From the sequence record PQ390715.1: a DNA stretch of 64,000 nucleotides, one strand, 5' to 3'. The notes under the pieces were generated by a model, which ran no database searches, was not told where the DNA came from, and saw only the letters and a list, made by a program, of their open reading frames with translations. Positions 1,947-18,281 of this stretch are shown here, in pieces. Both the position numbers and the translations under genes were made by a program. How positions within the stretch are numbered: position 1 is the first letter of the stretch; every line of letters begins with the position of its first letter.

Positions 1947-2031
1947 TATAATAGATACATTTATGCACCCTGTGGGTCAGTGAGCTATCTCTCAATGAAT
2001 ATATAATAGCAAAGGGACTGACCGAAATCAA
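1947..2031 (-). ncRNA. Family A small structured RNA/element, copy 1
   Basis: TTGATT-17-TATTAT promoter, hairpin TGAG-AGATAG-CTCA, then CCCACAGGGTGCATAAATGTATCTAT; no ORF. Confidence 0.55.
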
Positions 2032-2049
2032 TCCCTTTTTTAATCTTTT

Positions 2050-2634
2050 TTATCGTGTTACTTTACTTGCTGCCACATCACGCTTTTTATAGTACTGATT
2101 CCAGATATTGCGGGTTAAACCGTAATCAAGTACTTTAATAAGTCCATTACGATCCTGGCCGATATTCTGTTTTCTGATATCTCTTATCGTTAGTGTTGAT
2201 AATGTATCATCGACGTGTTGTAGTGCATCAGCAAAGCGGTGCTGGCGTTCAATGGCATTACGTTTAATATTGTACTTTAATTCGTTGCACGCGTTAACGT
2301 GCTTCACACTGCCTTTACTTGCAGTACTCAACCGATCCATAACGATAAACATATTATCAGGATCGCATAAATGCATATGCACCTTTGCAAAGTACTGTTT
2401 CAATTGAGGGCGGTCATAGTCTAAAAAATTCCATACCTTACATTCAGTTTCATTTTGTTCTACACCCGCATCACAATTGGCGACCTTAATCACTAACCGA
2501 TCATTTAAAGCGAATACAATACGGGAAGAACCCGCACCGATGATCTCCAGACCAGCTAACCGACAAGCTGAAAGGATCTCTTTGTTGGTTTCCATTTCTG
2601 ACAGGGTACGGATGAATTTAGTATAATTACGCAT
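2050..2634 (-). CDS. Ser/Thr protein kinase-like protein
   Basis: IGAGSSRIVF Gly-loop, VIKVA lysine, NETE alphaC glutamate, RDIRKQN catalytic loop, VLDYG (DFG equivalent). Confidence 0.8.
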   Translation of the reverse strand: MRNYTKFIRTLSEMETNKEILSACRLAGLEIIGAGSSRIVFALNDRLVIKVANCDAGVEQNETECKVWNFLDYDRPQLKQYFAKVHMHLCDPDNMFIVMDRLSTASKGSVKHVNACNELKYNIKRNAIERQHRFADALQHVDDTLSTLTIRDIRKQNIGQDRNGLIKVLDYGLTRNIWNQYYKKRDVAASKVTR

Positions 2635-2665
2635 TGCATGTTCTCCTTGAGTTAATGAAACTATC

Positions 2666-2908
2666 TTACAGTACTTTACTATCAATGGCAACCACTTTTT
2701 TCACACTTACAGCGTGAATCACTTCCTTAGTGTTTTTAGTACTGAATACTTTCGCTGTTCCATGTTCTACTGCAATGCGATAACGACCGTTAACATCAAC
2801 CATATTAATAAAGTCCGGTGTACTAAACCGAGTAGTACGGCATTTCAGTACTGTTAACAGTTCCACCAGCGATGTAGTTTCTTTGATACGTTTTTCTAAA
2901 GTAATCAT
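2666..2908 (-). CDS. Hypothetical protein
   Basis: Start MITLEK after a GGGG RBS. Confidence 0.65.
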   Translation of the reverse strand: MITLEKRIKETTSLVELLTVLKCRTTRFSTPDFINMVDVNGRYRIAVEHGTAKVFSTKNTKEVIHAVSVKKVVAIDSKVL

Positions 2909-2961
2909 TTTGTTTTCCCCGTGTTGGTATGTACATATAGTACTAAAACATTTGAGTACTG

Positions 2962-3216
2962 TCAACGTGATATTAGTTTTATTTTCTTATTATATTGTTG
3001 GTGTTCATATAGGTTTATCTTTCCTGTGTTCTCAATTACTATTCTGTTGTTAGTGTCTACATCGATTACACGCAGTTTTCCGTTGCTTAACTTCCTTGGT
3101 AATAGGTTACCATTAATAAACTCATTAGCAAGCTGTACGGCCTTTGTGATGATTCTCTGTGGTGCTTTATAGTGTACCCGCAAGATATTATCTTTAGATA
3201 GTTGTACCTTAATCAT
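2962..3216 (-). CDS. Hypothetical protein, possibly ParE/RelE-like fold
   Basis: Pattern P..I..KA..L.....G...RKL.....DV...RI.....L.EH..YNK recalls ParE-like toxin proteins (by eye only). Confidence 0.4.
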   Translation of the reverse strand: MIKVQLSKDNILRVHYKAPQRIITKAVQLANEFINGNLLPRKLSNGKLRVIDVDTNNRIVIENTGKINLYEHQQYNKKIKLISR

Positions 3217-3278
3217 TTTAGTTTATCCTATAAAAAAGGCGGGAACTGATCCCGCCGTGTTGTTAGTACTGCAAGTTA

Positions 3279-3683
3279 TTAGATAACCTGGCGGCGTTTA
3301 CTGTATACTGTTACACGATTACCCTTACGGTCGTGTCGGATCTCTTTCTGGTTGCGAACCAGTTCACTTGGACGCTTAAGGTTTGCCAGGTGATCCGCGT
3401 GAGTCCAAGCGGTATGGTTTGTCTGTACTTTGATATCAGAATCAGCGATAAATTCATCTTGTGCGTTAAGTACTGCCGCCAGTAAATCCGCTCGTTTTAG
3501 TTCTGATGCTGTTAGTACTGGCTCCGGTGAATTCACAATATCAGAGATTTCTTTGAACTGTACGGCCCAGCGTTGGCCTTTCGGTGCATCTTTGCCCATG
3601 TCTTTAAATGCTGCTCCTTCCTCGCGTGCAACAATACGGGCAGCTTCACGGGTAGCGTAGAATTTAGTAATCATGGTATACAT
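3279..3683 (-). CDS. Hypothetical early protein, paralogue of 15333..15599
   Basis: Shared YATRE.AR..AR..GA.FKDMG...G.RWA and HDRKGNRVTVYS. Confidence 0.85.
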   Translation of the reverse strand: MYTMITKFYATREAARIVAREEGAAFKDMGKDAPKGQRWAVQFKEISDIVNSPEPVLTASELKRADLLAAVLNAQDEFIADSDIKVQTNHTAWTHADHLANLKRPSELVRNQKEIRHDRKGNRVTVYSKRRQVI

Positions 3684-3769
3684 CCTATTAGTTGAGATAG
3701 TACTACAAGTTAGAGTCTATTATAAAGTACTATCTGGGCAATGTCAAATAGTACTTTAAATGGATTCTA

Positions 3770-4093
3770 TTACATGTCTTTCTTACGTTTTACATCGTAG
3801 TATCGAACTGTAATTTCTTTGTTGATCTCTTCCTCGATGCGGTGAATAACTTTTTCTTTCGGGTTGAAACCTATAACGGTTTCTTTAATGATCTCCAAGC
3901 CCGTGTATTCGCCTTGTGTACCGTAACCGTATGTAAAGGTTTCGTGTCCCAGGTCTTCCCAGCGGTCGCCAATTAACGCTGACACGTAGCAAGAGTGGTA
4001 AGTATTGCCGTTCCGATCAGTCCAGCGATTAACTTTAATGTCAAAGGAGGTTACAATTTTCAGTTCTACTTTCTGGGTAAGGATCATAGCCAT
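3770..4093 (-). CDS. Hypothetical early protein, paralogue of 9999..10343
   Basis: Shared RW....GNTY.S, YGY and VKRKKD C-terminus. Confidence 0.85.
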   Translation of the reverse strand: MAMILTQKVELKIVTSFDIKVNRWTDRNGNTYHSCYVSALIGDRWEDLGHETFTYGYGTQGEYTGLEIIKETVIGFNPKEKVIHRIEEEINKEITVRYYDVKRKKDM

Positions 4094-4178
4094 TTTTATT
4101 TCTCTCTCTTTGTTAGGAGGGGAACCATTCCCCCCTTGATGTAAACTATTATACAGTACTAAGATACTTTGTCAATAC

Positions 4179-4454
4179 TTAATTATTATAAATGTCGTGA
4201 ATAGTGATAAAGTTTTTACGACCGTAAACCTGCAAATCAATATCAATGTAGTGCTTATCAAGTACATCCTCGACGCTTAACGCGGTGTCGTGAATATCTT
4301 CGTAGAATTGAGGATCTACAATCTTGCTTAAGTCATCCGGCGTTAACTTATCGTTAAGCAGTTGAACCGCCTGGATATCTGCTTCACGTTTCCAGTCTTC
4401 CAGGTTAGTAGTCAGTACTTGTTCGATTTCGTTAGCTGTCAGTAGAATCCGCAT
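4179..4454 (-). CDS. Hypothetical early protein
   Basis: Own promoter and RBS. Confidence 0.75.
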   Translation of the reverse strand: MRILLTANEIEQVLTTNLEDWKREADIQAVQLLNDKLTPDDLSKIVDPQFYEDIHDTALSVEDVLDKHYIDIDLQVYGRKNFITIHDIYNN

Positions 4455-4523
4455 TTTAATGTTTCCTTATCAGGGGTTGATGTAAGTATTATACTCGTTT
4501 ACTTTCTATTGTCAAACTATTTT

Positions 4524-4631
4524 ATCAGGGGAGTTTTTCGTATGTCTTACTCCTGGACTACTTAACGGGGTTACTTGTTTCGTTCCCCGTCCTGATGTAA
4601 AACATTATACTTGATTCTAAGTACAATGCAA
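4524..4631 (-). ncRNA. Family B structured RNA, copy 1 (three-way junction, ~75 nt, with promoter)
   Basis: TTGCAT-16-TATAAT promoter; P1 ATCAGG/CCTGAT, P2 ACGGGG/CCCCGT, P3 GGAGT/ACTCC; no ORF; next promoter follows immediately. Confidence 0.65.
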
Positions 4632-4671
4632 GTACTTTTTTAAAAATAGTTTTCAGTACTATCCACCAGCA

Positions 4672-4751
4672 TATAATAGATACATTTATGCACCCTGTGG
4701 GCTGATTTGTTTCTATGCGTATATAATAGCAAAGGGACTGACCGGAGTCAA
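4672..4751 (-). ncRNA. Family A element, copy 2
   Basis: Promoter followed by CCCACAGGGTGCATAAATGTATCTAT. Confidence 0.55.
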
Positions 4752-5195
4752 TCCCTTTTTCAAATATTTTTAAACTTGTTTTGGGTTGCGATAGGTGATA
4801 GCGTTCGGGTACATTTGTTTAATGTTATTCCATGCCTGGTTAACATTGTAACCACTTGAGCGAATCAGTTGGTTACTACCGACACCTTGAAACACTACTT
4901 CGAATAAGAATTCTTTCATGCTTTCACCTCGCGATCTGCTTTACCTTTACGCCACGACATTACTAATTGTTCGCGTTGCCATAAGTCGAGTGATACAAAA
5001 AGTTTTGCGGTATCACTTTTAGGATACTCGCCATTAGTACCTAACCGATAAAACAGATCTTTCAGTACTGATAATTCTACTTGAATCATTTTATTACTCC
5101 TGATTGCGTTAATACTTCTACTATTGCATGAATGATCATAAGTACAGCTAAAACAATAATCATCGGATTCATTTGCATAAGCTGTACTCCTTATA

Positions 5196-5408
5196 TTAAT
5201 CTTTCAGCCAATGATCCTGAATGAATTTTTCGCCGGAACCTTGCTGCATTGATTGTAACAGACGTTCACGATGAGCGGCGGCGAATTGCTCAGTACTATG
5301 CGTTACGCCAGGCTGATAACGTGATACCCCATCCGGTCCGATGTATTGTACATCCCACGGTTTTTCGTTAGTATCAGACCATTTACGAACGATTAGTTGA
5401 CCTTGCAT
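5196..5408 (-). CDS. Hypothetical early protein
   Basis: Own promoter, leader hairpin and GAGGA RBS. Confidence 0.75.
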   Translation of the reverse strand: MQGQLIVRKWSDTNEKPWDVQYIGPDGVSRYQPGVTHSTEQFAAAHRERLLQSMQQGSGEKFIQDHWLKD

Positions 5409-5492
5409 TTTTCTTTCCTCTTAGTGGGGAGAATCATTTCTCCCCTTCATGTAACTTATTATACAGTACTATAATCTATTGTCAAATACTTT

Positions 5493-5681
5493 TTAAAGTT
5501 TATGAATCAATTCTTTATCTAAGCGATAGCGTACATTATTAATGGTAACAGCATTATTTTTAATGCTACGCTGTACAGGTCCACCAGCAATAACAAACGT
5601 TGCTTTATTACCCCGAACAATGATAGCACTTCCAGGATTACCGAAATCATCTTGTACTAAAATACTTGATAAGTTTTCCAT
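5493..5681 (-). CDS. Hypothetical early protein
   Basis: Leader hairpin and GAGGA RBS. Confidence 0.7.
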   Translation of the reverse strand: MENLSSILVQDDFGNPGSAIIVRGNKATFVIAGGPVQRSIKNNAVTINNVRYRLDKELIHKL

Positions 5682-5759
5682 TTTTATTTCCTCTTAGTAG
5701 GGGAAGATGTTTCCCCTTGATGTAAGTACTATAACAGTACTGAAAACTAAATGCAAGTA

Positions 5760-6116
5760 CTATGATAAAATCATGATAGGATATTCACTATCGATCAGTA
5801 CCTCGAATCCGAAACCTTCGTACCATTCTTTAAGATTAAAGGCGTTATCTTCTCCCGTATCGCATTCTAAAATGATACAATCTGAATCATCGGCGGCATC
5901 AATAAAGGCATTCATTAATTCGTTACCTTCACCATTGCCCCGACTATCAGGATCAACATAAAGAGAATCAATAAACGCTACACGGTCATAATCAAGATCC
6001 GGTGCAATGATTCCACGTTTAACAAACCAGTACTGCAATTGTGCTACTTTGCCCTGTACTTGATAGCCAGTGATCTCGCCATTGTCAGTAGTACGCGTGA
6101 TATGTTGTATTCCCAT
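5760..6116 (-). CDS. GNAT-family acetyltransferase
   Basis: IDSLYVDPDSRGNGEGNELM (motif A R/Q-x-x-G-x-G) and WYEGFGF (motif B). Confidence 0.85.
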   Translation of the reverse strand: MGIQHITRTTDNGEITGYQVQGKVAQLQYWFVKRGIIAPDLDYDRVAFIDSLYVDPDSRGNGEGNELMNAFIDAADDSDCIILECDTGEDNAFNLKEWYEGFGFEVLIDSEYPIMILS

Positions 6117-6179
6117 GATTTCAATCCTCAGTTAAGATATAAAATATTATAAACTATCTTTCAGTACTGTCAATACTTT

Positions 6180-6437
6180 TTATCTCATAGATCTATGCCA
6201 ACAATTACGCGGGGGACGTTTAAAAGTACTATCATGATCCTCCTGGCAAGTTATGCAGTACTTACATCCCTTAACGGCCTGGCGTCGATTCTCAGGGATT
6301 ATATCGCCGCAGTCGAGGCAATGTATCAGTGATTCTATTTGTGCGTTAATTTGCTTTCTAGCGTGGTTAACGGCGGCCTGAATCACTGCGTTAATCTCGT
6401 CTTGTTCGGCCCCATCTTTCGCGAATCCTACAGCCAT
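6180..6437 (-). CDS. TraR/DksA C4 zinc-finger protein (YbiI/TraR-like)
   Basis: GFAKDGAEQDEI N-terminus; CLDCGDIIPENRRQAVKGCKYCITCQ finger. Confidence 0.9.
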   Translation of the reverse strand: MAVGFAKDGAEQDEINAVIQAAVNHARKQINAQIESLIHCLDCGDIIPENRRQAVKGCKYCITCQEDHDSTFKRPPRNCWHRSMR

Positions 6438-6677
6438 TATTTTAACCTCATTATAAAAATACTATAGTACTGTAATGCGACAATAATATTACTTGTTCTT
6501 ACTTTTTCCAATCCACATGATACCACATATTCATCCCCATATGTGCGAAACGATACACCATGAAAATTTTTATACACTTGCACTACTAATCATAACCTTT
6601 CGTCTAACCAACTGCATAGAATTATACTACTTTACGCAAATTGATCAAGTATTGATCAGATCATTTTTTGATCAATA

Positions 6678-6764
6678 TTATACAGTTACATTTGTGCACC
6701 CTATGGGTTAGTGACGTTCTCGTCTTGATGTAAGTATTATGCCAGTACTTGATGATATTGTCAA
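6678..6764 (-). ncRNA. Family A element, copy 3
   Basis: TTGACA-17-CATAAT; hairpin GACG-AGAA-CGTC; CCCATAGGGTGCACAAATGTAACT. Confidence 0.55.
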
Positions 6765-6768
6765 TAGT

Positions 6769-6966
6769 TTATTTTAATTTTTTTCTGTCATTGATTAATG
6801 CTTTCAGTACTATACTAATGATTTGCAATGATTCATCAATGACTATAAAATTATTCTCTTTCATTAGATGATAGTTACCATTGATTGTATATTCTAAGGA
6901 GTACTGTTTACGTTTAATTTTTGATAATGTTTCTATTTGTTTTTGTACTGATTTCATGCTAATCAT
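6769..6966 (-). CDS. Hypothetical protein
   Basis: 65-aa ORF with RBS. Confidence 0.6.
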   Translation of the reverse strand: MISMKSVQKQIETLSKIKRKQYSLEYTINGNYHLMKENNFIVIDESLQIISIVLKALINDRKKLK

Positions 6967-7577
6967 TGTTAAACGTCCTGTAACGCATTCTAACGAGATA
7001 AACGGTTTAGTACTGGCATTGTATAGGGTAATGAATTAAAGCCCACCAGCGTTAACCAGTGGGCTATAATCTTACATCTTGCGGATAATCTTAACAGTAT
7101 CTTTCACCGATTTACCGTCTTGCTGGCATTGCTCGATCATTGCGTATTGTTCTGCTGTAAGATCCTCGCCAGTTTTTGCCAGTACTGCGTCGATGAATGA
7201 ATCCAGTGCGATCATTTTGTTTCTCTCTTAGGTTAAGTTAACTACTGTTTATAAAACTTATTATACAGTACTATCAAACGTTGTCAATATCTTTAATAGT
7301 ACTGGTAATATATTTTAGCGGTAATCGTCGTATGCTTTATTCACCTGGCGAATGTAACTTTCAAAGGCTTCGTCTACCGTTTCATACTCCCGAACATAAT
7401 CACCATAGGAAACTACATACATACCTTTTTGATCTTCAAACGTCATGATGATAGAATCCAGACCAACGATTTCAGTTTTTGCGATGATAGCCATTTTTTA
7501 ATTCCTTAGTAGTGTAGTTGATAAAACTTATTATGCCAGTACTATCAATCATTGTCAATAGTACTGTGATAATATTT

Positions 7578-7790
7578 TTAGTTAATGATAGTCAGTGTAA
7601 AATTGTAATCCCCTGCCTGGTATAGTACTTTGTCGCCGAACGTACCAACACGTTTCATATTGCAATAGATACCCATAACACTTTTTACATCTTTGATATT
7701 CCGAACGCCTGTGATATCCTTGTTGAAATTTTCATGATCAGAAAATAAAACTTGTTTTGCATTTTTCAGTACAGTGCAGATATTAGCCAT
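7578..7790 (-). CDS. Hypothetical early protein
   Basis: Own promoter and leader hairpin. Confidence 0.75.
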   Translation of the reverse strand: MANICTVLKNAKQVLFSDHENFNKDITGVRNIKDVKSVMGIYCNMKRVGTFGDKVLYQAGDYNFTLTIIN

Positions 7791-7884
7791 TTTGTTTTCT
7801 CTTTGTTAGTGGGGAGAACTATTCTCCCCTTGATGTAACTTATTATACAGTACTATAATCTATTGTCAAACTATTTTTTTTATA

Positions 7885-8226
7885 TTATTCGAAATCTTCT
7901 GGACCGGACTGATAATCATCTTCACCGTATGCACTTTCTAACCGCTCGCCAGTGTGATCATCAGTTAGTGAGTCATCCTCATAGTTCACGTCTACGCCCG
8001 TGATGTAAAACTGGCTATCGTCTGGATCATTGAAATTAATTTTCTGAATGTTTACAATAACGGTATTGATGCCCAGGACACCGCCATCAGCAGTTACAAA
8101 GTACTGATAGTTTTCACAACCGCCTGAATTGAAACCGTAATTAATTTCGGCCCGACCATCATTTAAACGCAGTGCCTGGGCGATGATTTCGTTTTCAAAG
8201 TTAGATTGAGCAATTGAGATAGTCAT
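7885..8226 (-). CDS. Hypothetical acidic early protein (start MTISIA)
   Basis: Own promoter, leader hairpin and AAGGA RBS. Confidence 0.75.
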   Translation of the reverse strand: MTISIAQSNFENEIIAQALRLNDGRAEINYGFNSGGCENYQYFVTADGGVLGINTVIVNIQKINFNDPDDSQFYITGVDVNYEDDSLTDDHTGERLESAYGEDDYQSGPEDFE

Positions 8227-8342
8227 GATTCGTTTCCTTATTACCAGGGGAAACCGTTTCCCCTCTCGATGTAAAACATTATACGCCAATTGAGATAGTT
8301 TGCAAGTACTTTTTAAAAATAGTTTTCAGTACTCAATACTTA

Positions 8343-8427
8343 TATAATAGATACACTTATGCACCCGGTGGGCTAGTGATCTATCTCTCAATGAATATAT
8401 AATAGCAAAATGGCTGACCGAAGTCAA
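8343..8427 (-). ncRNA. Family A element, copy 4
   Basis: Promoter within a UUCG terminator; CCCACCGGGTGCATAAGTGTATCTAT. Confidence 0.55.
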
Positions 8428-8440
8428 CCACTTTTTTCAT

Positions 8441-8575
8441 TTATTTTTTAGCTTTCAGTACTGCCGCCTTTCGCGTCATGCCTTGCTTAATGTACTCCTT
8501 TACTTTCGCTTTACGTGCTTTCGCTTTATCTGCTTTCGTTTTAGGAGTACTGTAAATTAAACCGTTAGGATTCAT
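8441..8575 (-). CDS. Small highly basic protein (44 aa, MNPNGLIYSTPKTKADKAKARKAKVK...)
   Basis: Manual translation; below the ORF-track cutoff; ends just before a terminator. Confidence 0.55.
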   Translation of the reverse strand: MNPNGLIYSTPKTKADKAKARKAKVKEYIKQGMTRKAAVLKAKK

Positions 8576-9112
8576 TTAAATCACCATAAAGAATAGATAG
8601 GTTACTAACAATGCCGCGATCAATGCACCGATCACCGCTGAACTGTAATAAGCTAATGATTTCATTTTTTAGCCTGGAAGTAATGTTTAATTTGTGCGGC
8701 GGTCAGTGCACAATTTCGCAGGAAGTTTTCTGTATAACTGCGGCGAGTACTGAAAGAGAATTGACCTTTGCCGTTGCCGATAGTAACATCAAACCGAGCG
8801 TTGTATTGTTTCATTTTGATTCTCCTTGTATCAGGGGAGAACCATTTCCCCCCTCTATGAAAACCATTATACAGTACTGAAAACTAATTGCAAGTACTAT
8901 TTTTTAGATTTACGCAAACTTTCTACCATCTCAGGAGTAAGGCCCGGCGGGTAGGAAACCACTTCATCAACGAAACGTAAAGGGAATACCCCAGCGAAAG
9001 GTGAACATGCTTTCTTGGTATTACTCTTTTTTGATGCTTTCATTTCATATTCCTTAATTAGTGGGGAGAATCATTTCTCCCCTTCATGTAAAACATTATA
9101 CGCGTTTAAAAA

Positions 9113-9322: not shown

Positions 9323-9327
9323 ATTAA

Positions 9328-9597: not shown

Positions 9598-9648
9598 GGT
9601 ATAATCCTCAATATAAGCGGCCTAAATCAACCGCTAACGATGTTTTGA

Positions 9649-9918: not shown

Positions 9919-9998
9919 TATACTATCCTCTTAATTTGATTTAATTTCTTTCCCCTATGCAGACACTATATCAAAGTATCTGCATAAAGTAAAGCTAA

Positions 9999-10343
9999 TT
10001 AAAGATCTTTTTTGCGTTTAACATCAGTTACCGAACTGTAAACAGTGATATTATTGTCACGACAAAAACGGGAAAGATAAGAACCGTGTAAAAACTCTTT
10101 ATCTTCCATATTAATAACCTTGCTAAATTCTTCCATTGCTACAGTGTCAAAGTGATCCTCGTATCCATATTTGAACGGCACGTTTACTACTTCAATAAAT
10201 TCGCCATTGATTTCTACGTCTACCGTTAAAGAGAAATAAGTGTTACCATATGAAGCCTGGAACCAACGCCGAGCGGCAATATGTACAACTTCAACAGAAG
10301 ACAGGTTGATGTTTTGTGCTGCGATAGTGTTGATGTTAGCCAT
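9999..10343 (-). CDS. Hypothetical early protein, paralogue of 3770..4093
   Basis: Shared motifs; own promoter. Confidence 0.85.
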   Translation of the reverse strand: MANINTIAAQNINLSSVEVVHIAARRWFQASYGNTYFSLTVDVEINGEFIEVVNVPFKYGYEDHFDTVAMEEFSKVINMEDKEFLHGSYLSRFCRDNNITVYSSVTDVKRKKDL

Positions 10344-10655
10344 TTTTTGTTTCCTCTTAGTTGTCTTGATAAAATCTATTATGCCAGTACTATCAATCTA
10401 TGTCAATAGTACTGTGATAATAATTTTACTTACTTTTTGCTTTCTTTACAGCTTCCACCTGGTCGGCCCACTCTTTACCCCATACTTGAGCATTATAGTG
10501 ATACTGACAAAGAGCAACGCCCCGTTTCAAACCAGTAATAGATTTTTTACCACATTGACAAGTTTTCATATTAGTTTCCTCATTATCAGGGAGAACCATT
10601 TCTCCCCTTGATGTAATGTATTATACTTTATCTGATTTACTTTGCAAGTACTTTT

Positions 10656-10883
10656 TTAATTTAATTCATCCAGGCAAAGGATACGATCTACACCCAAATC
10701 AGTTAAGCTAATAGACGGCACTTGATAGGTTTCAATGTATGCTACATCGGCCCACTGACCGAACTCACCTGCCGCCCAGTTATACATTGCAAAATGTAAT
10801 TCCGCACCTTTCTTATTAGTAATTACAGCAACAGTAGAAGAATTGCCAGTAGTACCAGATACGCGAGTGATTACGATAGCCAT
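10656..10883 (-). CDS. Hypothetical early protein (start MAIVIT)
   Basis: Own promoter and leader hairpin. Confidence 0.75.
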   Translation of the reverse strand: MAIVITRVSGTTGNSSTVAVITNKKGAELHFAMYNWAAGEFGQWADVAYIETYQVPSISLTDLGVDRILCLDELN

Positions 10884-11168
10884 TGTTTTGATTCCTTTGA
10901 TTTGGAAGGAGAACCGTTTCCCCCTCTCGATGTAAAACATTATACGCTAATCTCTTAATCGTGCAAGTACTTTTTATTACTTTTTGCAAAATACTTTAAA
11001 CGCACTCAATCGCATTCTAACGACTTTAACGCCACCAGCTAGGGCAATACATCAGATAAACAGTTTAATACGTTAGAATCGATTCTAGGCGGTGCTAGTG
11101 GACTGGAATACTATAGACACAAAAAAGCCCACTGTTTAAGGTGGGCTAGTGATTCAGTACTTTAATTG

Positions 11169-11651
11169 TTATGCTTCAACTTTGCGATGAGCTTCGATCC
11201 ATTCCTCGCGAGTCATACCACTGGAGTTAATCGCATCCAGTACTACCGCAATGCAGTTACCACGCACCGGAATCAGATATTCTTCCCCGTTATCAAGTAC
11301 TACCGCTACACGCTCTTGAATCCATTTTTTAGGCTTAGATTCCGGCTTATCTTCACCGTACTTTTTCGCCAGGGCTTTTTGTGCCATCTCTGTAACTACT
11401 TCCAGATCCAATCCAACTACTGCCGCTTGGATACTTTCAATTGTTGCTTGTAGTTCTGCTTCACGGGCCGCCTTCGCTGCTTCAATCTCTGCCGCTTTAT
11501 TTGCTTGTAGTTCTTTCGCAGTACTGTAAGCGATGTTAAAATTATTGCGTACCGCTTTCATGGTATCGTTATCCAGTTCAGCCAGGATCTCTGCCGCGAC
11601 GTTAGTTTCATTTGCTACCAGTGCTTTGATGAATGATTTTACATTAGCCAT
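11169..11651 (-). CDS. H-NS-like protein with a divergent DNA-binding motif
   Basis: N-terminal Ala/Glu coiled coil; C-terminal VLDNGEEYLIPVRGNCIAVVLDAINSSGMTREEWI aligns by eye with H-NS [35 protein letters not shown]. Confidence 0.6.
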   Translation of the reverse strand: MANVKSFIKALVANETNVAAEILAELDNDTMKAVRNNFNIAYSTAKELQANKAAEIEAAKAAREAELQATIESIQAAVVGLDLEVVTEMAQKALAKKYGEDKPESKPKKWIQERVAVVLDNGEEYLIPVRGNCIAVVLDAINSSGMTREEWIEAHRKVEA

Positions 11652-11713
11652 TTTATAAATCCTCAATTAAAGTTTAGTTTACGTTTATTAGTGTATCAAA
11701 GTTTTCTCGACGT

Positions 11714-11802
11714 GTCCAGTTTTTCGTTCGACTTACTGGCGGTCTACTTAGTGTTCCCCGTCTTGATGTAATACATTCTACGCCTTTTTGCGGTAATGTC
11801 AA
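11714..11802 (-). ncRNA. Family B RNA variant, in the leader of the H-NS-like gene
   Basis: TTGACA-16-TAGAAT; ACGGGGAAC..TAAGTAG..CCAGT-AAGTCGAACGAAAA-ACTGG (compensatory change versus GGAGT/ACTCC). Confidence 0.6.
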
Positions 11803-11884
11803 CTACTTTTTTAAAACTATTTTCAAAGTATCTCAGTACTACTGTACTACAAAAACAAAAAAGCCCACCAGGTGGGCTATGTAC

Positions 11885-12115
11885 TTAATCAGTAATTAAA
11901 ACATTAAACACTTTATCATTTAACGTTATGGGTGTACTGCTACCAGGCTTGAGATCAGTTAGTACACCTGCAATAGCTTTTTCATTGGCGACCTTTCCAG
12001 TGTCCAACAGTACTACAGTACTGATAAGATTAACGCTCGTTTCAATATCATAATGCACGGCGTTAAGTAGTTGTGTAGTACTGCTTTCGTTAAGTAAAAC
12101 AATTCGCTTAGTCAT
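11885..12115 (-). CDS. Hypothetical protein
   Basis: Followed by a terminator (CCCACCAGGTGGG). Confidence 0.7.
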   Translation of the reverse strand: MTKRIVLLNESSTTQLLNAVHYDIETSVNLISTVVLLDTGKVANEKAIAGVLTDLKPGSSTPITLNDKVFNVLITD

Positions 12116-12136
12116 GATGTTACCCCGTAGTATCTA

Positions 12137-12436
12137 TCAACGGCAATTAATAACGCCGGTATGAGTTACTTTCTCAGTATCCATAACAGTGACCGAACCG
12201 CGTTTAGTACTGGCATCATAATAAATTGTTGTGCTACCGTTTTCGTCTTCTTCATGGAACGGGCCGTTTTTAAATGCTTCCGGCTGGATCTCTAAATCCT
12301 TTAATACAATCTCGCCAGTTCTTTCATCGGTCATTGCAACAGTGCACTGAATGAATTTATCACCAGGTACATCTAACGACGCATTAACAGCGAAAGAGGA
12401 AACAGATAAAGCCAGGGCGATGATTGCAATTTTCAT
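12137..12436 (-). CDS. Putative secreted/periplasmic protein
   Basis: Signal-peptide-like MKIAIIALALSVSSFAVNA. Confidence 0.7.
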   Translation of the reverse strand: MKIAIIALALSVSSFAVNASLDVPGDKFIQCTVAMTDERTGEIVLKDLEIQPEAFKNGPFHEEDENGSTTIYYDASTKRGSVTVMDTEKVTHTGVINCR

Positions 12437-12520
12437 TTGATTATCCTTAGTTACCAGGGGGAACCGCTCCCCCTTGCGATGTAAAATATTATACAGTACT
12501 AAAAACTAATTGCAAGTACT

Positions 12521-12757
12521 TTATGATTTTTTATAAAACATTTCAGCAGTGATATTTTTACCCGTTGGTTGTACTTTATCCAGAATTTTTTGATGTCCAG
12601 GCCGTCCAAATGAATAAGATCCGTAAACAGTAAACCAGTAGTTACCCTCAGTGTTTACATGTACAGCACAATAGGGAACGCCCCGCGATTCATCACTAGT
12701 AAAGTGTGATACCGTACCCGTTACATTCGCAGACGTTGATTTGATTTGTTCGACCAT
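12521..12757 (-). CDS. Hypothetical early protein
   Basis: Own promoter and leader hairpin. Confidence 0.75.
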   Translation of the reverse strand: MVEQIKSTSANVTGTVSHFTSDESRGVPYCAVHVNTEGNYWFTVYGSYSFGRPGHQKILDKVQPTGKNITAEMFYKKS

Positions 12758-12865
12758 TTTCTTATTCCTTAGTTACCAGGGGAACCGCTCCCCCTATGCA
12801 AAACATTATACGCGTTTAAAAACTAATAGCAAGTATTTTAATAAAAAGTATTTGGAAAATAATTG

Positions 12866-12950
12866 TTGACAAGTGCATCCAGTACTGGCATAATTACTAC
12901 ATCAAGACGAAACAGTCACTAACCCACCGGGTGCCGAGATCCGTCTATTA
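12866..12950 (+). ncRNA. Family A element, copy 5 (opposite orientation)
   Basis: TTGACA-17-CATAAT; GAC-GAAACA-GTC; CCCACCGGGTGCC. Confidence 0.55.
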
Positions 12951-12999
12951 AATGATTCAGTACTAAAAAAAGAAAGGGGATCAATTGATCCCCTCGTTG

Positions 13000-13221
13000 T
13001 TATTTTGTAAGGTATAAACAGAAGTCACCTTTATTTGCTACGCCGCCAGTGTAACGCGAGGAATAGTTAGAAACGTCCTGGACTTCTGCTATTACCAGGG
13101 TATCATCATTCAATTCGTCGCAGAAGCAAACGGCTGGATCTTGTACGCCGATATTGTCGGCATGTTCCCGCATAGATTTAACCAGTGCTTCAAGTTGGGA
13201 AAGAGTAGTGATATTAGCCAT
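13000..13221 (-). CDS. Hypothetical early protein
   Basis: Own promoter, leader hairpin, terminator at 12975-12994. Confidence 0.75.
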   Translation of the reverse strand: MANITTLSQLEALVKSMREHADNIGVQDPAVCFCDELNDDTLVIAEVQDVSNYSSRYTGGVANKGDFCLYLTK

Positions 13222-13304
13222 TTTATTTTCCTCATTACCAGGGAGAACCATTTCTCCCCTTGATGTAAACTATTATACAGTACTAAAAACTAATTGCAAG
13301 TACT

Positions 13305-13586
13305 TTAACTGTAAGATCCGCAACGGTCGCAGTAGTGCCCCTCGTCATCGTCAACGAATTGACCAACGAAATTATCTACTTTCGCTTTCAGGTTATTATA
13401 ATCGTTTTCTACTTCATTTAAACGCTTCTGGTAGTATTCCAGTGCTTTAAGATATGCCGCATCAGCAGTTTTCTCCTGCATAGCTAAATTCATGCCACGC
13501 GTTTCATCGTACAGCCAAAAACCATCGGTGCACTGGCTAATAGATAATGACTTGCTTAGTACTGTATAGTTAATTACTTTACTCAT
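13305..13586 (-). CDS. Hypothetical early protein (start MSKVIN)
   Basis: Leader hairpin and GAGGG RBS; C-terminal CDRC. Confidence 0.75.
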   Translation of the reverse strand: MSKVINYTVLSKSLSISQCTDGFWLYDETRGMNLAMQEKTADAAYLKALEYYQKRLNEVENDYNNLKAKVDNFVGQFVDDDEGHYCDRCGSYS

Positions 13587-13644
13587 TAGATAAACCCTCA
13601 ATAAAGGCGGGAACCATTCCCCGCCATTGTTACAGTACTGAATA

Positions 13645-13884
13645 TTACATTCCAACCATTGCAGCACGGATCGCAGTAGTGCTATACTTAAAGCCGTCCG
13701 GCGTTGTAGTAGTACCGTTGGCTTTTAATCTGCGGTACATGCATTCCGCTGCAATATCTTTAGTTCTACTTTGTGCGATACAACTTTGTGCAAGCCGATA
13801 CAATGACTCACCGTTATTAATCCATAAGGAAACATTCCAATGAGTTTTGTTTTTGTGCCCGTTGTAAGTTTTAGTACTAGCCAT
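13645..13884 (-). CDS. Conserved phage protein (YNG...W.VSLWINN type), paralogue of 15686..15925
   Basis: Near-identical HKNKTHWNVSLWINN and TPDGFKYSTTAIRAAMVGM. Confidence 0.85.
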   Translation of the reverse strand: MASTKTYNGHKNKTHWNVSLWINNGESLYRLAQSCIAQSRTKDIAAECMYRRLKANGTTTTPDGFKYSTTAIRAAMVGM

Positions 13885-13976
13885 TTTTTTTAATCCTCGT
13901 TTGAGCGGGGAACCACTCCCCGCCTCGATATAAAGTATTATACGCCTTTAAACTTAGTTTGCAAGTACTTTTTAAA

Positions 13977-14588
13977 TTAATATTCGATTGATTCTACTAC
14001 GCCATCAATAACATTGAATTGATATTCGTTACCCTCAATCAGTGCTGTAATGTTTTCAGTAGTGAATTGATCCTCATATGCATTCTCTAAATCACGGTAC
14101 AACTTGCGGGATAATTCACGAATAGTTTCAGTGAGTAGTTCCTCAAGCTCATTAACTAACGTTTCTTGTTTTGCGGTTAAATCAGTGTAAGCCGATTCAA
14201 TGTACCCGCTTACAGTGTTTTCATGCGAGTAGTGGGAGTGAGAACGCTTTACACTCATCGCCAAATCATCTTCATTCAGCAGGTGACGGATTGAGCGATA
14301 CTTAGTTAATGCTCTTACCTTGCGTAAAAACTTCACTGCGTCAACGTGGTCAGTACTGATTGATGCACCGTCACCCTGGGACCAAAAACCACTGAATTGT
14401 ATTTCAGCGTCATTAATGCCATATTCCGGCAATACTGTTTCTTTATAGTGTTCAATTTCACTTTCAGAAAAATAATCGTCGTTTGAGTTTTTTTCACGTT
14501 CCCGAACCAGTTCGATAGCTGACGTTTTTTGTTCTGCGTTCAATTCAGAAAAATCCATAACGAAAGTAGTAGTAGTGATAGTTTTCAT
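13977..14588 (-). CDS. FSGFWSQGDGA-motif protein (family often annotated as TA antitoxin-like)
   Basis: TTT.V..F.EL..EQK..A N-terminus and IQFSGFWSQGDGAS motif; annotation from recall. Confidence 0.55.
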   Translation of the reverse strand: MKTITTTTFVMDFSELNAEQKTSAIELVREREKNSNDDYFSESEIEHYKETVLPEYGINDAEIQFSGFWSQGDGASISTDHVDAVKFLRKVRALTKYRSIRHLLNEDDLAMSVKRSHSHYSHENTVSGYIESAYTDLTAKQETLVNELEELLTETIRELSRKLYRDLENAYEDQFTTENITALIEGNEYQFNVIDGVVESIEY

Positions 14589-14656
14589 TTTGTAACTCTC
14601 ATTCAGTAGTTGATGTAAGTATTATACGCTTTTAAAAACATTTGTCAAACTATTTT

Positions 14657-14766
14657 ATCAGGGGAGTTTTTCGTGTGCCTTACTCCTGGGCTACTTAACG
14701 GGGAGTTACTTATTTCGTTCCCCGTCCTGATGTAAAACATTATACGCCTTTAAACATAGTTTGCAA
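14657..14766 (-). ncRNA. Family B structured RNA, copy 3
   Basis: Near-identical to 4524-4631, with changes confined to loops and linkers. Confidence 0.65.
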
Positions 14767-14811
14767 GTACTTTTTAAAAATAGTTTTCAGTACTGAATAT
14801 TAAAAAAAGTA

Positions 14812-14890
14812 TTGACAGCATTATCAAGTACTGGCATAATATACCCCATGACAACAGCTAACCCACCGGGTGCACAATTGTAACTATACT
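14812..14890 (+). ncRNA. Family A element, copy 6
   Basis: TTGACA-17-CATAAT; CCCACCGGGTGCACAATTGTAACTAT; converges on copy 7. Confidence 0.55.
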
Positions 14891-14899
14891 AAACTACTT

Positions 14900-14984
14900 T
14901 TTCTATAGATACACTCCCGCACCCTATGGGCTACGGCTTATCTGCCAATGAATACATTATGCCAGTACTGACAAAATAAGTCAA
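14900..14984 (-). ncRNA. Family A element, copy 7
   Basis: TTGACT-17-CATAAT; GGC-AGATAA-GCC; CCCATAGGGTGCGGGAGTGTATCTAT. Confidence 0.55.
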
Positions 14985-15014
14985 TACCGGCAATTGTAAA
15001 GATTTGTAAACTGC

Positions 15015-15245
15015 TTATACTGCAATCGCGTCCAGGCTATAATAATAATAAGTGCCGTATTGGTGTACTTTATTACCTTTTATTTCAGTACTGAATGAAT
15101 CCGAACGGTTTGCATATGATGTTAATTTAAAGTACTTTGATTTGCTGATACGTTGCCATACACCGCAGATCCGCTGTAAGTAAGTAGTTTTATTAGTGGT
15201 AGTATCTTTTACGGTTTTAACTTCAGTCATATACATATTAGTCAT
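15015..15245 (-). CDS. Hypothetical early protein
   Basis: Own promoter and GGAG RBS. Confidence 0.75.
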   Translation of the reverse strand: MTNMYMTEVKTVKDTTTNKTTYLQRICGVWQRISKSKYFKLTSYANRSDSFSTEIKGNKVHQYGTYYYYSLDAIAV

Positions 15246-15332
15246 TTTTATTACTCCAGGTTATAGGCGGGAAGTGTTCCCGCTCTCGATGTAAAACATT
15301 ATACTCCATTAAACATAGTTTGCAAGTACTTT

Positions 15333-15599
15333 TTATTCAAGTACTGCAATCTTTTTAGTACTGTACACAGTAACGCGGTTGCCCTTGCGGTCGTGCTTTA
15401 TTTCTACCACTCGACGCGATACACTATCGGGACTTTTTAACGCCGCTAACCAGTACTGTAATGATCTGGCTGTACTACGCTTTACAATGGCCCAACGTTT
15501 ACCACGTTCCGATTGTACGCCCATATCTTTAAACGTTGCCCCGTCCTGGCGTGCGGCGATCCGAGCTTGTTCACGCGTCGCAAAATACTTAATATTCAT
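15333..15599 (-). CDS. Paralogue of 3279..3683 (start MNIKYF)
   Basis: Shared motifs. Confidence 0.8.
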   Translation of the reverse strand: MNIKYFATREQARIAARQDGATFKDMGVQSERGKRWAIVKRSTARSLQYWLAALKSPDSVSRRVVEIKHDRKGNRVTVYSTKKIAVLE

Positions 15600-15685
15600 G
15601 CTGTTGCCCTTATCGTTGGTGTATGAATAAAACACTATTATAAAGTACTATCGCAAAAAAATGATAGTACTTTAAATAAATTCTA

Positions 15686-15925
15686 TTACATTCCAACCAT
15701 TGCCGCACGGATCGCAGTAGTGCTATATTTGAATCCGTCCGGTGTTTTATCTTGTCCAGTCTGTTCTAAAAATAACATCATATGACGGGCCGCATCATTG
15801 CGATTAGTGCTATCGTTAATAAAGTCCTGGGCCAACCGGTATAATGATTCATCGTTATTAATCCAAAGGCTTACATTCCAATGAGTTTTGTTTTTGTGAC
15901 CTAAGAACATTTTTGATTTAGCCAT
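15686..15925 (-). CDS. Paralogue of 13645..13884
   Basis: Shared motifs; own promoter and leader. Confidence 0.85.
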   Translation of the reverse strand: MAKSKMFLGHKNKTHWNVSLWINNDESLYRLAQDFINDSTNRNDAARHMMLFLEQTGQDKTPDGFKYSTTAIRAAMVGM

Positions 15926-16017
15926 TTTTTAATCCTCTTATATAGTGGGGAACTATTCCCCACCTGATAGAAAGTATTATACTTGTTTTAACTTAGTATG
16001 CAAGTACTTTATTAAAC

Positions 16018-16380
16018 TTATTCGTAAATTTTGCCACTGTCAGCCCATACCAGGAAACGAGGCATATTATCCCATGCATCTTGTTTTAAATTTAAACCGT
16101 GTAATACTTCTGTACTTTCCATTCCTGGTACTGGTTTACTATACACCGCGAACAATTCGCCCATGTACTGATAAGCCATCGTTAAATCACTGGCGATCAT
16201 CTTATGGATCATCGCATCAAGCATCACGGTTGCGGCGTATTGTTCACGCTTAAGCGGTAACATTGCAATAAGTTCCCGATAAGCTGAAATGTGAATCTTT
16301 ACCGTTTCAGCCGGAAGACCTTTCATCTCTTCACGGAAGTTAACCAGGTTAGCAATAATTTTAGTGATTTGAGTCGCCAT
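16018..16380 (-). CDS. Hypothetical early protein (start MATQIT)
   Basis: Own promoter and leader. Confidence 0.75.
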   Translation of the reverse strand: MATQITKIIANLVNFREEMKGLPAETVKIHISAYRELIAMLPLKREQYAATVMLDAMIHKMIASDLTMAYQYMGELFAVYSKPVPGMESTEVLHGLNLKQDAWDNMPRFLVWADSGKIYE

Positions 16381-16509
16381 CGTTTTAATCTCTCGTAATG
16401 TGTAGCAGGAAGTGTTCCCGCTCTCGATGTAAAACATTATACGCTTTTTTCAGTACGGTGCAAGTACTTTCTACAAATACTTTTTAAAATAGTTTTCTTT
16501 CTATATAGG

Positions 16510-16601
16510 AGTACTATTATTCAGTACTATTATTCAGTACTATCATTCAGTACTGCAACCATCCAGGGGAACTATCTTTCTATATAGGGGAACTATCTTT
16601 C
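16510..16601. repeat. 4 x 13-bp AGTACTATYATTC tandem repeat plus 2 x GGGGAACTATCTTTC
   Basis: AGTACT at 16510, 16523, 16536, 16549; direct repeats at 16566 and 16587. Confidence 0.9.
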
Positions 16602-16766
16602 AGTACTGAATCAACCAAATCACTACTACACCCCATAAAACGGCCTCAGACGCATTCTAACGCATTAATACACCTAAGCTATACATTTGCACCATTCCAA
16701 TCATTCCAGGGCTTTACGGGCCGTTTAAACGCGTTAAATTATTTTCAATTATTTTGTTTTTAGGTA

Positions 16767-17066
16767 TTGACTTGATCCTGAAAAAGCGTATAATTACTAC
16801 ATAGACGCGAGAAAGCGGAAACCCCAGAGGGTGCGGAATTACGCCCAAAATTCAAGATATAAAAAAAGGATACACTCCCGCACCCTAGCAGGTAAACGCA
16901 CTTTCTCAGTACTGAAATATAGTACCATAGTCCGGCCCAGGATGGCAAGCAAATTAATTAAAACTTTTTTCATCCAGGGTATTGCTTTATTTTTCCAGTA
17001 CTGTATAATAGTTCCATCAAGTCGAGAAAGACTCAAGCCCACCGGGTGCATAGTTACGCCCAAAAT
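16767..17066. ncRNA. Family A elements, copies 8-10 (16767+, ~16869-16948-, 16982+)
   Basis: Promoters with CGC-GAGAAA-GCG and AGTC-GAGAAA-GACT hairpins and a GGGTGC core; the two + copies share TTACGCCCAAAATTCA. Confidence 0.5.
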
Positions 17067-18270: not shown

Positions 18271-18281
18271 GGGTTTAGCCT

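Follow-up and report, generated by a model that had tools for sequence, protein, structure and literature searches.

The stretch of DNA considered here, called the window throughout, comprises 64,000 nucleotides (nt) from the genome of Escherichia phage SHEFM2K (PQ390715), a giant E. coli phage that belongs to Asteriusvirus and to the 121Q/RaK2-like jumbo phages; its positions 1-18300 are identical to positions 62001-80300 of the record, as found by BLAST. More than 200 phage records match the window, the best of them being jumbo phages of the 121Q/PBECO4 group (Asteriusvirus). The direct terminal repeat (DTR) of this phage carries ~11 copies of a unit, termed Family A, that consists of a strong host-type promoter, a short hairpin and an invariant motif of ~30 bases, and that contains no gene. 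Family A is real, strongly non-random and conserved across genera, and all of its copies in the window lie inside the DTR.

The extent of the DTR follows from alignment with phage vB_Ec-M-J, in which the homologous sequence, in reverse orientation, is annotated as a 21,525-bp DTR that starts from the physical left end; the physical genome end is placed in this way at about window position 18150. The DTR of SHEFM2K is ~20 kb long, most of it being window 1 to ~18150, and its inner boundary lies ~1.7 kb left of the window start. For the close relative fEgEco12, restriction digests confirmed that the DTR measures 20,993 bp (PMC13070987). The DTR part of the window is a row of small minus-strand genes, nearly each of which has its own near-consensus σ70 promoter. 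Their generic early-gene cassette (window 1-16500, minus strand) is composed of TTGACA or TTGCAA, a 16-nt spacer, TATAAT, a start ACAUC(A/G)AG (transcript start ACAUCAAG), a G+C-rich 5′ hairpin (GGGGAGAA-N3-5-UUCUCCCC), a Shine-Dalgarno (SD) sequence and ATG. Three examples contain all these parts:

1601-1520, minus strand: promoter, start, 5′ hairpin, SD and ATG
4175-4094, minus strand: the same
7869-7790, minus strand: the same

High early transcription has been reported for many of the DTR genes of PA5oct, a distant relative (PMC7318152). Since consensus host-type promoters crowd the DTR and its PA5oct counterpart behaves in this manner, Family A sits almost certainly in the earliest-expressed region of the genome, in line with an initial, sequence-only reading of this DNA that had called the elements very early.

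That reading had listed ten dispersed copies, and all of them are present by both pattern and covariance model. The core CCCAYMGGGTGC, searched with at most one mismatch, gives nine matches in the window against 0.14 expected from shuffles, and the core of the tenth, degenerate copy reads CTGCTAGGGTGC (16880-16891, minus strand). When a covariance model was built on the ten copies and run over the 64 kb, it returned these ten alone at E≤1, and thus none in the remaining 46 kb; one more copy, the 11th, is situated 258-311 nt left of the window start. The copies are listed below with their covariance-model scores, promoter hexamers, likely transcription starts, 5′ hairpin (H1), core and the candidate helix formed by GGGTGC and a downstream segment (H2).

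1945..2031, minus strand: copy 1, 53.8 bits, sense to the early genes and upstream of the promoter of the 1605-1904 gene; -35 TTGATT 2031-2026, -10 TATTAT 2008-2003, likely start ~1996; H1 1993-1982 (GAG-AGATAG-CTC), core CCCACAGGGTGC 1976-1965, candidate H2 1970-1953 (GGGTGC-ATAAAT-GTATCT)
2011..2038, minus strand: terminator-like hairpin (12 bp) belonging to the upstream gene; its stem includes the -35 hexamer of copy 1
4731-4758 (copy 2) and 8407-8434 (copy 4), minus strand: the same hairpin-over--35 design
4670..4751, minus strand: copy 2, 49.5 bits; -35 4751-4746, -10 4728-4723, likely start ~4716; no H1 stem (AUAGAAACAAAUCAG), core 4701-4690, candidate H2 4695-4678
4670-4663, minus strand: Chi octamer GCTGGTGG directly after copy 2
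6676..6764, minus strand: copy 3, 59.3 bits; -35 TTGACA 6764-6759, -10 CATAAT 6741-6736 with TG, likely start ~6729; H1 6724-6713 (GACG-AGAA-CGTC), core CCCATAGGGTGC 6707-6696, candidate H2 6701-6684
8341..8427, minus strand: copy 4, 55 bits; -35 8427-8422, -10 8404-8399, likely start ~8392; H1 8390-8377 (weak, TGA/TCA), core CCCACCGGGTGC 8372-8361, candidate H2 8366-8349
12866..12994, plus strand: copy 5, 53.8 bits, stand-alone and antisense to the early genes; -35 12866-12871, -10 12889-12894, likely start ~12901; H1 12906-12917 (GAC-GAAACA-GTC), core 12923-12934, candidate H2 12929-12946
12975-12994: two-way terminator hairpin of copy 5, giving a predicted RNA of ~95-100 nt
14812..14893, plus strand: copy 6, 40.7 bits, left member of convergent pair 1; -35 14812-14817, -10 14835-14840, likely start ~14848; no H1 stem, core 14862-14873, candidate H2 14868-14885
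14886..14906: 21-nt A/T-rich centre of pair 1, whose GGGTGC boxes are 56 nt apart
14899..14984, minus strand: copy 7, 46.5 bits, right member of convergent pair 1; -35 14984-14979, -10 14961-14956, likely start ~14949; H1 14946-14935 (GGC-AGATAA-GCC), core 14930-14919, candidate H2 14924-14907
16767..16854, plus strand: copy 8, 47.7 bits, left member of convergent pair 2; -35 16767-16772, -10 TATAAT 16789-16794, likely start ~16801; H1 16806-16817 (CGC-GAGAAA-GCG), core CCCAGAGGGTGC 16823-16834, candidate H2 16829-16846 (GGGTGC-GGAATT-ACGCCC)
16860..16948, minus strand: copy 9, degenerate, 40.6 bits, right member of convergent pair 2; -35 TTGCCA 16948-16943, -10 TACTAT 16924-16919; H1 16910-16900 (ACT-GAGAA-AGT), core CTGCTAGGGTGC 16891-16880, candidate H2 16885-16868 (GGGTGC-GGGAGT-GTATCC), then U7, terminator-like
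16982..17069, plus strand: copy 10, 52.2 bits, directed at the physical genome end ~1.1 kb off; -35 TTGCTT 16982-16987, -10 TATAAT 17004-17009, likely start ~17016; H1 17020-17033 (AGTC-GAGAAA-GACT), core 17038-17049, candidate H2 17044-17061

A σ70-type promoter in the same orientation is found at every Family A copy in every genus, and each window copy has a -35/-10 pair with a spacer of 16-18 nt. Seven of the window copies score 10-11 out of 12 against TTGACA-N16-18-TATAAT, five of these having TG before the -10, while three promoters are weaker at 9-10 out of 12 (1965- TTGATT-17-TATTAT, 17038+ TTGCTT-16-TATAAT and 16881- TTGCCA-18-TACTAT), which makes the earlier count of nine consensus promoters slightly generous. 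Runs of A lie upstream of the -35, and a conserved CAT is located 5-7 nt past the -10, at the A of which transcription probably starts. GGGTGC follows 27-34 nt past the -10 and begins at predicted RNA position +21 to +29. Neither SD nor ATG was found downstream of any of the window copies, nor is there a conserved frame; the description of a multicopy family that is coupled to σ70 promoters and lacks a ribosome-binding site and open reading frame (ORF) holds for all ten. Yet the GenBank record, annotated with PHANOTATE, puts ‘hypothetical proteins’ of 30-42 codons over several copies:

~1930-2031: M2K_0169
4640-4732: M2K_0176
8326-8427: M2K_0191
12741-12869: M2K_0208

The start codon of M2K_0169, which covers copy 1, is the TTG of the -35 hexamer and lies upstream of the predicted transcription start, and for this reason the coding sequences annotated over Family A copies are very likely spurious, that is artefacts of gene calling. 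A protein-coding reading was rejected on the lack of a conserved frame, SD or ATG and because the annotated mini-genes start at or before the -35.

The hairpin H1 begins 3-5 nt past the transcription start and has a stem of 3-6 bp and a purine-rich, A-rich loop (AGAACAA, AGAUAA, GCGAAA, GAGAAA). It is present in eight of the ten window copies, the exceptions being 4690- (copy 2) and 14862+ (copy 6), and 83 distinct copies from relatives display 30 different stems (e.g., GACG/CGUC, GAG/CUC, AGUC/GACU, GGAG/CUCC, GCCA/UGGC, CAGA/UCUG, ACAAA/UUUGU), in which each of the three inner stem positions shows every one of the four Watson-Crick pair types; there are also occasional G-U pairs, which would be mismatches on the opposite strand. 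A stem of at least 3 bp occurs in 74 of these 83 copies, as compared with 51.7 ± 3.6 in shuffles (~6 standard deviations), and one of at least 4 bp in 49, as compared with 23.9 ± 3.7; the covarying hairpin that had been noticed in most copies is thereby confirmed. About one copy in nine has no H1 stem and keeps the A-rich tract there, e.g., AUAGAAACAAAUCAG. The spacing from the end of H1 to the core is narrow (3-6 nt). Since H1 occupies the position of the generic early-mRNA 5′ hairpin, after the same ACAU(C/U)(A/G) start, it is probably a general feature of the 5′ ends of phage early transcripts and a generic 5′-end stabiliser, not the part specific to Family A. A long-range pairing of the H1 loop AGAUA with a downstream UAUCU, suggested by several copies and by minimum free energy folding, was rejected, as UAUCU occurs with every loop type and there is no covariation.

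What is specific to Family A lies further downstream. The anatomy of the motif was derived from 165 distinct copies that were collected: it spans ~30 nt, has no insertion or deletion (indel) in any copy and reads Y-U-A-R-CCCA-Y-M-GGGUGC-R-K-A-R-N-U-N-Y-R-U-C-Y-A-U. Its GGGUGC can pair with RYRYCY six nt downstream to form H2, and the bases opposite G, G, G, U and G alternate solely between the two that are able to pair. Two positions are pairable in 165/165 copies (UA 112, UG 52, CG 1; GU 128, GC 37). The rare changes in GGGUGC are mostly matched, as in GGGCGG with CCGUCC (phage Munch) and GGAUGC with an A-U pair, and five of the seven copies with G at position 6 of GGGUGC pair; when the register is slid, H2 pairing falls from 90% to 34-65%. 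G-U pairs form the majority of H2. As they would be A-C mismatches on the other strand, the substitution pattern points to an RNA made from the promoter strand, which is good evidence, if not proof. A mutual-information scan over all column pairs from -14 to +40 found no further helix. Several readings of the core as a DNA signal were rejected: DnaA box, Chi, CRP-type and LexA-type sites by inspection (Chi octamers do lie beside some copies, separate from the core), and a promoter for an extracytoplasmic-function sigma factor (TAACCC-N16-CGTCTA) on the ground that its would-be spacer is the most conserved part.

Behind H2 the tail is A/U-rich, positions +18 to +40 after GGGTGC being mostly A or T, and a -10-like TAnnnT lies at +17 (35% of copies) or +19 (29%) from GGGUGC, where ~3% would be expected per position. 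One may ask if the motif is a second, phage-controlled promoter nested in the unit, with CCCAYMGGGTGC as the box of an activator or phage sigma factor 11 nt upstream of a TAnnnT -10. Such a layout is the geometry of T4 MotA-dependent middle promoters. The register between box and TAnnnT is fixed and free of indels, with the hexamer enriched at both places, and a sigma-like factor is encoded in the early region of relatives (PMC5259590). On the other side, the second-position A of the hexamer is only 73% conserved and its final T 56%, about one-third of copies have no TAnnnT, no copy is without the upstream σ70 promoter, which a free-standing promoter would not need, and the middle-type motif proposed for this group is a different one (TGAAACG, PMC5259590). 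This explanation is considered very unlikely.

The distribution of Family A was followed in related jumbo phages with the covariance model, and copies were found there too, confined to the terminal repeat. Phage vB_Ec-M-J has 11, all in 1-21525, the annotated DTR; Klebsiella phage Muenster ~10, all in the repeat predicted by PhageTerm (1-20030); Pectobacterium phage CBB ~14, all in its 22,456-bp repeat; Cronobacter phage GAP32 ~14; and Salmonella phage Munch 10 in the first 20.4 kb. In EC22.5-2, of which 350 kb of the 352-kb record were searched, all 10 significant matches are clustered within 19 kb, and the remaining 330 kb have none; the sole other match has 16 bits (E = 0.32). A 91-nt copy matches this phage group alone (33 Escherichia, 9 Klebsiella, 6 Salmonella, 2 Cronobacter, 2 Pectobacterium and 1 Erwinia record), and the core is identical across phages of six host genera. 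In distant genera the transcribed part aligns whereas the promoter does not; that of copy 7 is 80-88% conserved in RaK2, K64-1, GAP32, Munch, CBB and Hallingskeid. Among 185,579 bacterial and archaeal species, each represented by one genome, a strict 27-nt pattern gave six matches, all in unrelated metagenome-assembled genomes, and none in Enterobacterales. With no Enterobacterales match and a core identical across six host genera, a host counterpart or mimicry, i.e., of a host RNA or a CRISPR repeat, was rejected. In metagenomes the 27-nt pattern found 47 loci, in which the covariance model then detected 109 copies; an earlier pattern scan of IMG/VR gave mostly chance matches in unrelated contigs, and the jumbo contigs alone were useful.

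With gathering thresholds, the window matches no Rfam family; a search of 1-18300 at E≤5 gives four weak matches, none of them on a Family A copy; no transfer RNA or transfer-messenger RNA was found in the window. The papers searched on 121Q, PBECO4, CBB, fEgEco12, Muenster and related phages make no mention of these elements. No prior description of Family A was found, and its conserved non-coding payload, use of both strands, paired geometry and confinement to the DTR are new.

Family A copies occur in three contexts. Sense copies (1-4 in the window) precede the own promoter of the next gene by ~40-60 nt, and the terminator-like hairpin of the gene upstream often contains their -35 hexamer. 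Stand-alone antisense cassettes (copy 5 and several in relatives) consist of promoter, element, a spacer of ~25 nt and a two-way terminator that is shared with the neighbour gene; it is solely at these copies that a terminator lies within 100 nt (e.g., 12975-12994, or Muenster 11992-). Convergent pairs, represented in the window by copies 6/7 and 8/9, run into each other. Four of the ten window copies are unpaired and sense, the other six being antisense or in convergent pairs, and relatives are alike. The earlier expectation of a discrete product of 55-65 nt finds no support in the layout of the copies: only stand-alone copies have a terminator behind them, with a predicted RNA of ~95-100 nt, while sense and paired copies would run on.

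These orientations bear on the idea that Family A is a cis-acting signal, in which the nascent hairpin, the box 10-12 nt behind it and the TAnnnT after H2 would pause, terminate or modify the polymerase near the promoter. Known signals of this kind are hairpin-stabilised or σ70-dependent promoter-proximal pauses and the nut, put and ops loading sites. The coupling to a σ70 promoter is obligatory and the H1-core spacing narrow; TAnnnT stands at +17 or +19 in ~64% of copies, H2 is followed by a U-run in a terminator-like manner in copy 9 and some relatives, and sense copies lie upstream of early genes, all of which would suit such a signal. Nearly half of the copies, however, oppose genes or each other, with a terminator or partner within 100 nt and no operon to read through, the promoter-core distance varies by 8 nt, which is ill-suited to a sigma-phased DNA signal, and the bases around the box do not fit the elemental-pause consensus (G-10 / Y-1 / G+1). 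As in λ nut and HK022 put, a short structured RNA is located just downstream of early promoters, and the purine-rich loops of H1 (GAAACA, GAGAAA, GCGAAA) recall the boxB loops of nut; unlike there, no boxA-like sequence was seen by reading and there are at least ten copies instead of one per operon. Membership of nut/put was rejected on orientation, with just four of the ten window copies unpaired and sense. A cis-acting signal is overall an unlikely explanation.

The convergent pairs have a geometry of their own. They are imperfect palindromes of ~110 bp with a 21-bp A/T-rich centre, and their GGGTGC boxes are exactly 56 nt apart in 21 of 33 distinct pairs (from Escherichia and Mimasvirus phages and metagenomes), the 21-nt centres of which have no sequence in common. 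The other spacings are 67 (n=4), 74 (n=4), 77 or 78 (n=3) and 53 nt (n=1). Every pair spaced at least 67 nt contains a central palindrome (core AATGATAATCATT) that matches the E. coli Fur-box consensus; in the centre of a Munch pair, TGATAATGATAATCATTTAC, 17 of 19 positions match this consensus. Such pairs are

Munch 1009-1083 and 7409-7476
L048 4388-4466
L042 6066-6133
metagenome loci L071, L076, L089, L097, L103 and L113

There is no Fur box in the window, and 56-nt pairs, including both window pairs, are without one. The host iron regulator Fur may gate the 67-78-nt pairs in some lineages, as judged from these palindromes.

Paired geometry is among the arguments for a transcription-activated DNA site, either an R-loop-primed origin, as T4 oriF and oriG, or a site of DTR recombination or processing, which the promoter would open or prime and at which convergent pairs would allow two-way initiation. 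Strict confinement to the DTR speaks for it, as do the exact 56-nt spacing across genera with the 67 and 78 classes in steps of 11, the order of a G-run in the RNA and then A/T-rich DNA, and the T4-type replication genes of these phages (PMC5259590). T4 origins resemble Family A in having a host-polymerase promoter followed by an A/T-rich stretch, but they are few and have no conserved structured RNA motif. Moreover, most Family A copies are single, and the box lacks dyad symmetry. Variation that is limited to transitions and tolerates G-U, together with the covarying hairpin, suggests a folded RNA and not a hybrid or duplex site, and 10-15 origins within 20 kb would be unusual. A DNA site of this type is judged improbable.

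The closest described system is the promoter-early stem-loop (PeSL) cassette of T4-type phages (Arbiol et al. 2010, PMC2839356; Comeau et al. 2014, PMC4122927). Both PeSLs and Family A have a strong σ70-like promoter with an A/T-rich upstream region, an adjacent stem-loop and many repeats among small early ORFans in a plastic region, and in both, some copies have a terminator-like hairpin that overlaps the -35. A link with indels, known for PeSLs, may hold for Family A too, with one clear case. This is the 320-bp segment 6449-6768, which contains copy 3, a further promoter and an ORF of 29-48 codons; it is missing from EC22.5-2, where the flanks are adjacent, and present in vB_Ec-M-J and TH47. 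Cassettes come and go as units. As to the stem-loop itself, copies 1, 2 and 4 have the 12-bp terminator-like hairpin over the -35, whereas the others have just the 3-5-bp H1 after the start. The main difference is that PeSLs end in SD and start codon and have no conserved transcribed payload, while Family A has no SD, ATG or ORF, and carries instead a 30-nt motif that is invariant across genera, on both strands, in convergent pairs of fixed spacing and within the DTR. The generic early-gene cassette described above is PeSL-like in design, and Family A seems to have been derived from this scaffold.

It could then be argued that Family A is a PeSL-type cassette with no RNA function of its own, which insulates or boosts neighbouring early genes and offers ~100 bp of homology for cassette cross-overs. 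The promoter types, the ACAUCAAG start and the place of the hairpin are those of the generic cassette, the upstream terminator-like hairpin overlaps the -35 in three copies, as in one PeSL subclass (PMC2839356), copy 3 lies inside the indel relative to EC22.5-2, and some homology blocks with other phages start or end beside copies (window 1905, 14794). Recombination, however, needs mere similarity, and leaves unexplained an invariant 12-nt box and a 30-nt motif without indels in 165 copies; the phages that bear Family A have genomes otherwise <30% alike by average nucleotide identity (PMC13070987). The absent SD and start codon speak against it as well. This explanation appears distinctly improbable.

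The preferred explanation, to which we give a probability of about one-half, is that Family A constitutes a new family of early small RNAs (sRNAs) built on the generic promoter-plus-stem-loop (PeSL-like) cassette of the phage. A functional RNA is the simplest explanation because the promoter is obligatory and oriented, H1 covaries, the substitutions in H2 are of the RNA type, some cassettes stand alone and the transcribed part is conserved across genera; stand-alone copies argue in addition for independent sRNA genes, since complete cassettes are placed antisense between genes, as sRNA genes are. The RNA nature of Family A is well supported but not proven. In the proposed mechanism host σ70 RNA polymerase would start at the conserved CAT in ~11 non-coding DTR units, and would make an RNA with a short 5′ hairpin (H1) within the first 20 nt, a single-stranded YUAR-CCCAYM stretch, the invariant GGGUGC paired with RYRYCY six nt downstream (H2), and an A/U-rich tail. 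The SD and ORF of the generic cassette would be replaced by the invariant ~30-nt payload, functional as RNA and most likely a binding platform for one conserved partner. With ~20 strong promoters per injected genome, firing early, the cell would be flooded in the first minutes with an RNA that presumably acts in trans. A single conserved partner, which could be a protein conserved among the phages or a host factor that Enterobacterales share, is suggested because the motif is strictly invariant across six host genera with no host copy.

Several observations weigh against an sRNA family. The pairing of H2 is equalled by 44 of 500 shuffles, a test that, given the invariance of the 5′ arm, does not discriminate between a helix and a motif conserved as plain sequence. 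A rival mini-hairpin, RCCC-AYM-GGGU, fits equally well, being 96.6% pairable with one compensated copy (CCU/AGG); it corresponds to the CCC-AYM-GGG mini-stem of the sequence-only reading, which exists as sequence and is mutually exclusive with the pairing of GGGUGC and RYRYCY. The energies predicted for folding are unremarkable (z from -1.8 to +0.2). No terminator separates the sense copies from the promoter that comes next, and their transcripts would run into the mRNA. A clean 3′ end signal is found in a minority of copies. The exactness of the 56-nt spacing, and its increase in steps to 67 and 78, suggest that the DNA, or the pair as a whole, is constrained. For targets in the window, the only strong complements are the copies' own opposite strands (19 against 12.6 expected), and no transcriptome for Asteriusvirus, Alcyoneusvirus or Mimasvirus was found in the searchable literature. 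The earlier suggestions of a sponge, decoy or R-loop gained nothing from these searches, in which no target was found in the window and the motif did not occur in host genomes.

A more far-reaching, and rather unlikely, version of the sRNA explanation is a new class of RNA effectors, a ~50-nt module, conserved throughout the jumbo phages of Enterobacterales and delivered from ~20 promoters per genome, that within minutes would capture or re-programme a single universal machine of the host (RNA polymerase, Rho/Nus, Hfq, RNase E or the ribosome), with the convergent pairs producing a dimeric RNA via a 21-bp duplex and with Fur gating in some lineages through the Fur box at the pair centre. A 21-bp RNA duplex would correspond to two A-form turns, to which longer pairs would add steps of 11, giving a symmetric dimer.

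Known sRNAs offer further comparisons. Qrr1-5 and OmrA/B are, like Family A, several paralogous small units with an invariant stretch flanked by variable hairpins, and some Family A copies also have their own terminator; they differ in that for Family A no target complementarity was found in the window, most copies have no canonical U-tail terminator, and the units are phage-borne and DTR-confined. The Pseudomonas jumbo phage PA5oct has in its DTR two ORF-less, highly transcribed RNAs, ncRNA001 and ncRNA002 (Lood et al. 2020, PMC7318152), and its DTR ncRNAs can rank among the most abundant phage transcripts (PMC7318152). Unlike Family A, they are 236 and 451 nt long, single-copy and without a recognisable promoter, and homology was rejected, the best covariance-model score on them (record 8263-8498 and 21951-22401) being 12.6 bits. 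In this phage supergroup, non-coding RNAs of the DTR may be recurrent without being homologous. A mimic of a type III antitoxin (pseudo-ToxI) was also considered. ToxI-type antitoxins are tandem direct repeats of ~34-36 nt; Family A copies are dispersed at intervals of 0.1-4.5 kb on both strands, and the candidate was rejected.

The RaK2/121Q jumbo phages are under development for therapy, although >80% of their genes and their entire non-coding content are unexplained, and Family A is now hidden in GenBank beneath spurious ‘hypothetical protein’ calls. If an RNA effector, it would join a very small number of phage RNAs known to target a host function that is conserved; if an origin or processing site, it would explain replication or maintenance of the 20-kb terminal repeats. 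The covariance model is in any case a ready marker of the terminal repeat, and of the physical ends in assemblies deposited as circles.

A second promoter-driven, ORF-less family is present in the same region in three copies, in which a consensus promoter is followed by an RNA of ~85 nt that would start with ACAUCAGGACGGGGAAC. Its long-range stem is compensated between copies (CCAGGAG...CUCCCCUG as against CCGCCAG...CUGGACACG).

4500-4650, minus strand: second ORF-less family
14632-14782, minus strand: second ORF-less family
11672-11822, minus strand: second ORF-less family

Eight Chi octamers lie in the 18-kb DTR part, seven on the minus strand, an orientation in which they would halt RecBCD coming in from the repeat copy at the right end, and one on the plus strand. 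The opposed sites 17494 and 17506 form a hairpin, and in several relatives Chi directly follows Family A copies that have no hairpin.

1456, 2863, 4663, 5581, 7043, 11032 and 17494, minus strand: Chi octamers (CCACCAGC on the plus strand)
17506, plus strand: Chi octamer (GCTGGTGG on the plus strand), ~640 bp from the left end

The last 1.8 kb to the physical genome end (window 16450-18300) is non-coding and contains many short repeats, i.e., tandem ATTATTCAGTACT units at 16510-16560, GGGGAACTATC motifs, and ‘ccatccag’ and ‘tagccgtct’ repeats at 17230-17350; a strong promoter at 17107-17135 is directed at the genome end. Finally, the palindrome AGTACT, often as CAGTACTG, is hugely over-represented, with 128 sites in the DTR part (1-18150), where 5.9 are expected, and, in the window outside it, 79 (6.6 expected) and 81 (8.7 expected). 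It is found in coding and non-coding DNA, in promoter spacers and directly after many Family A copies, and its frequency suggests a genome-wide binding or modification site.

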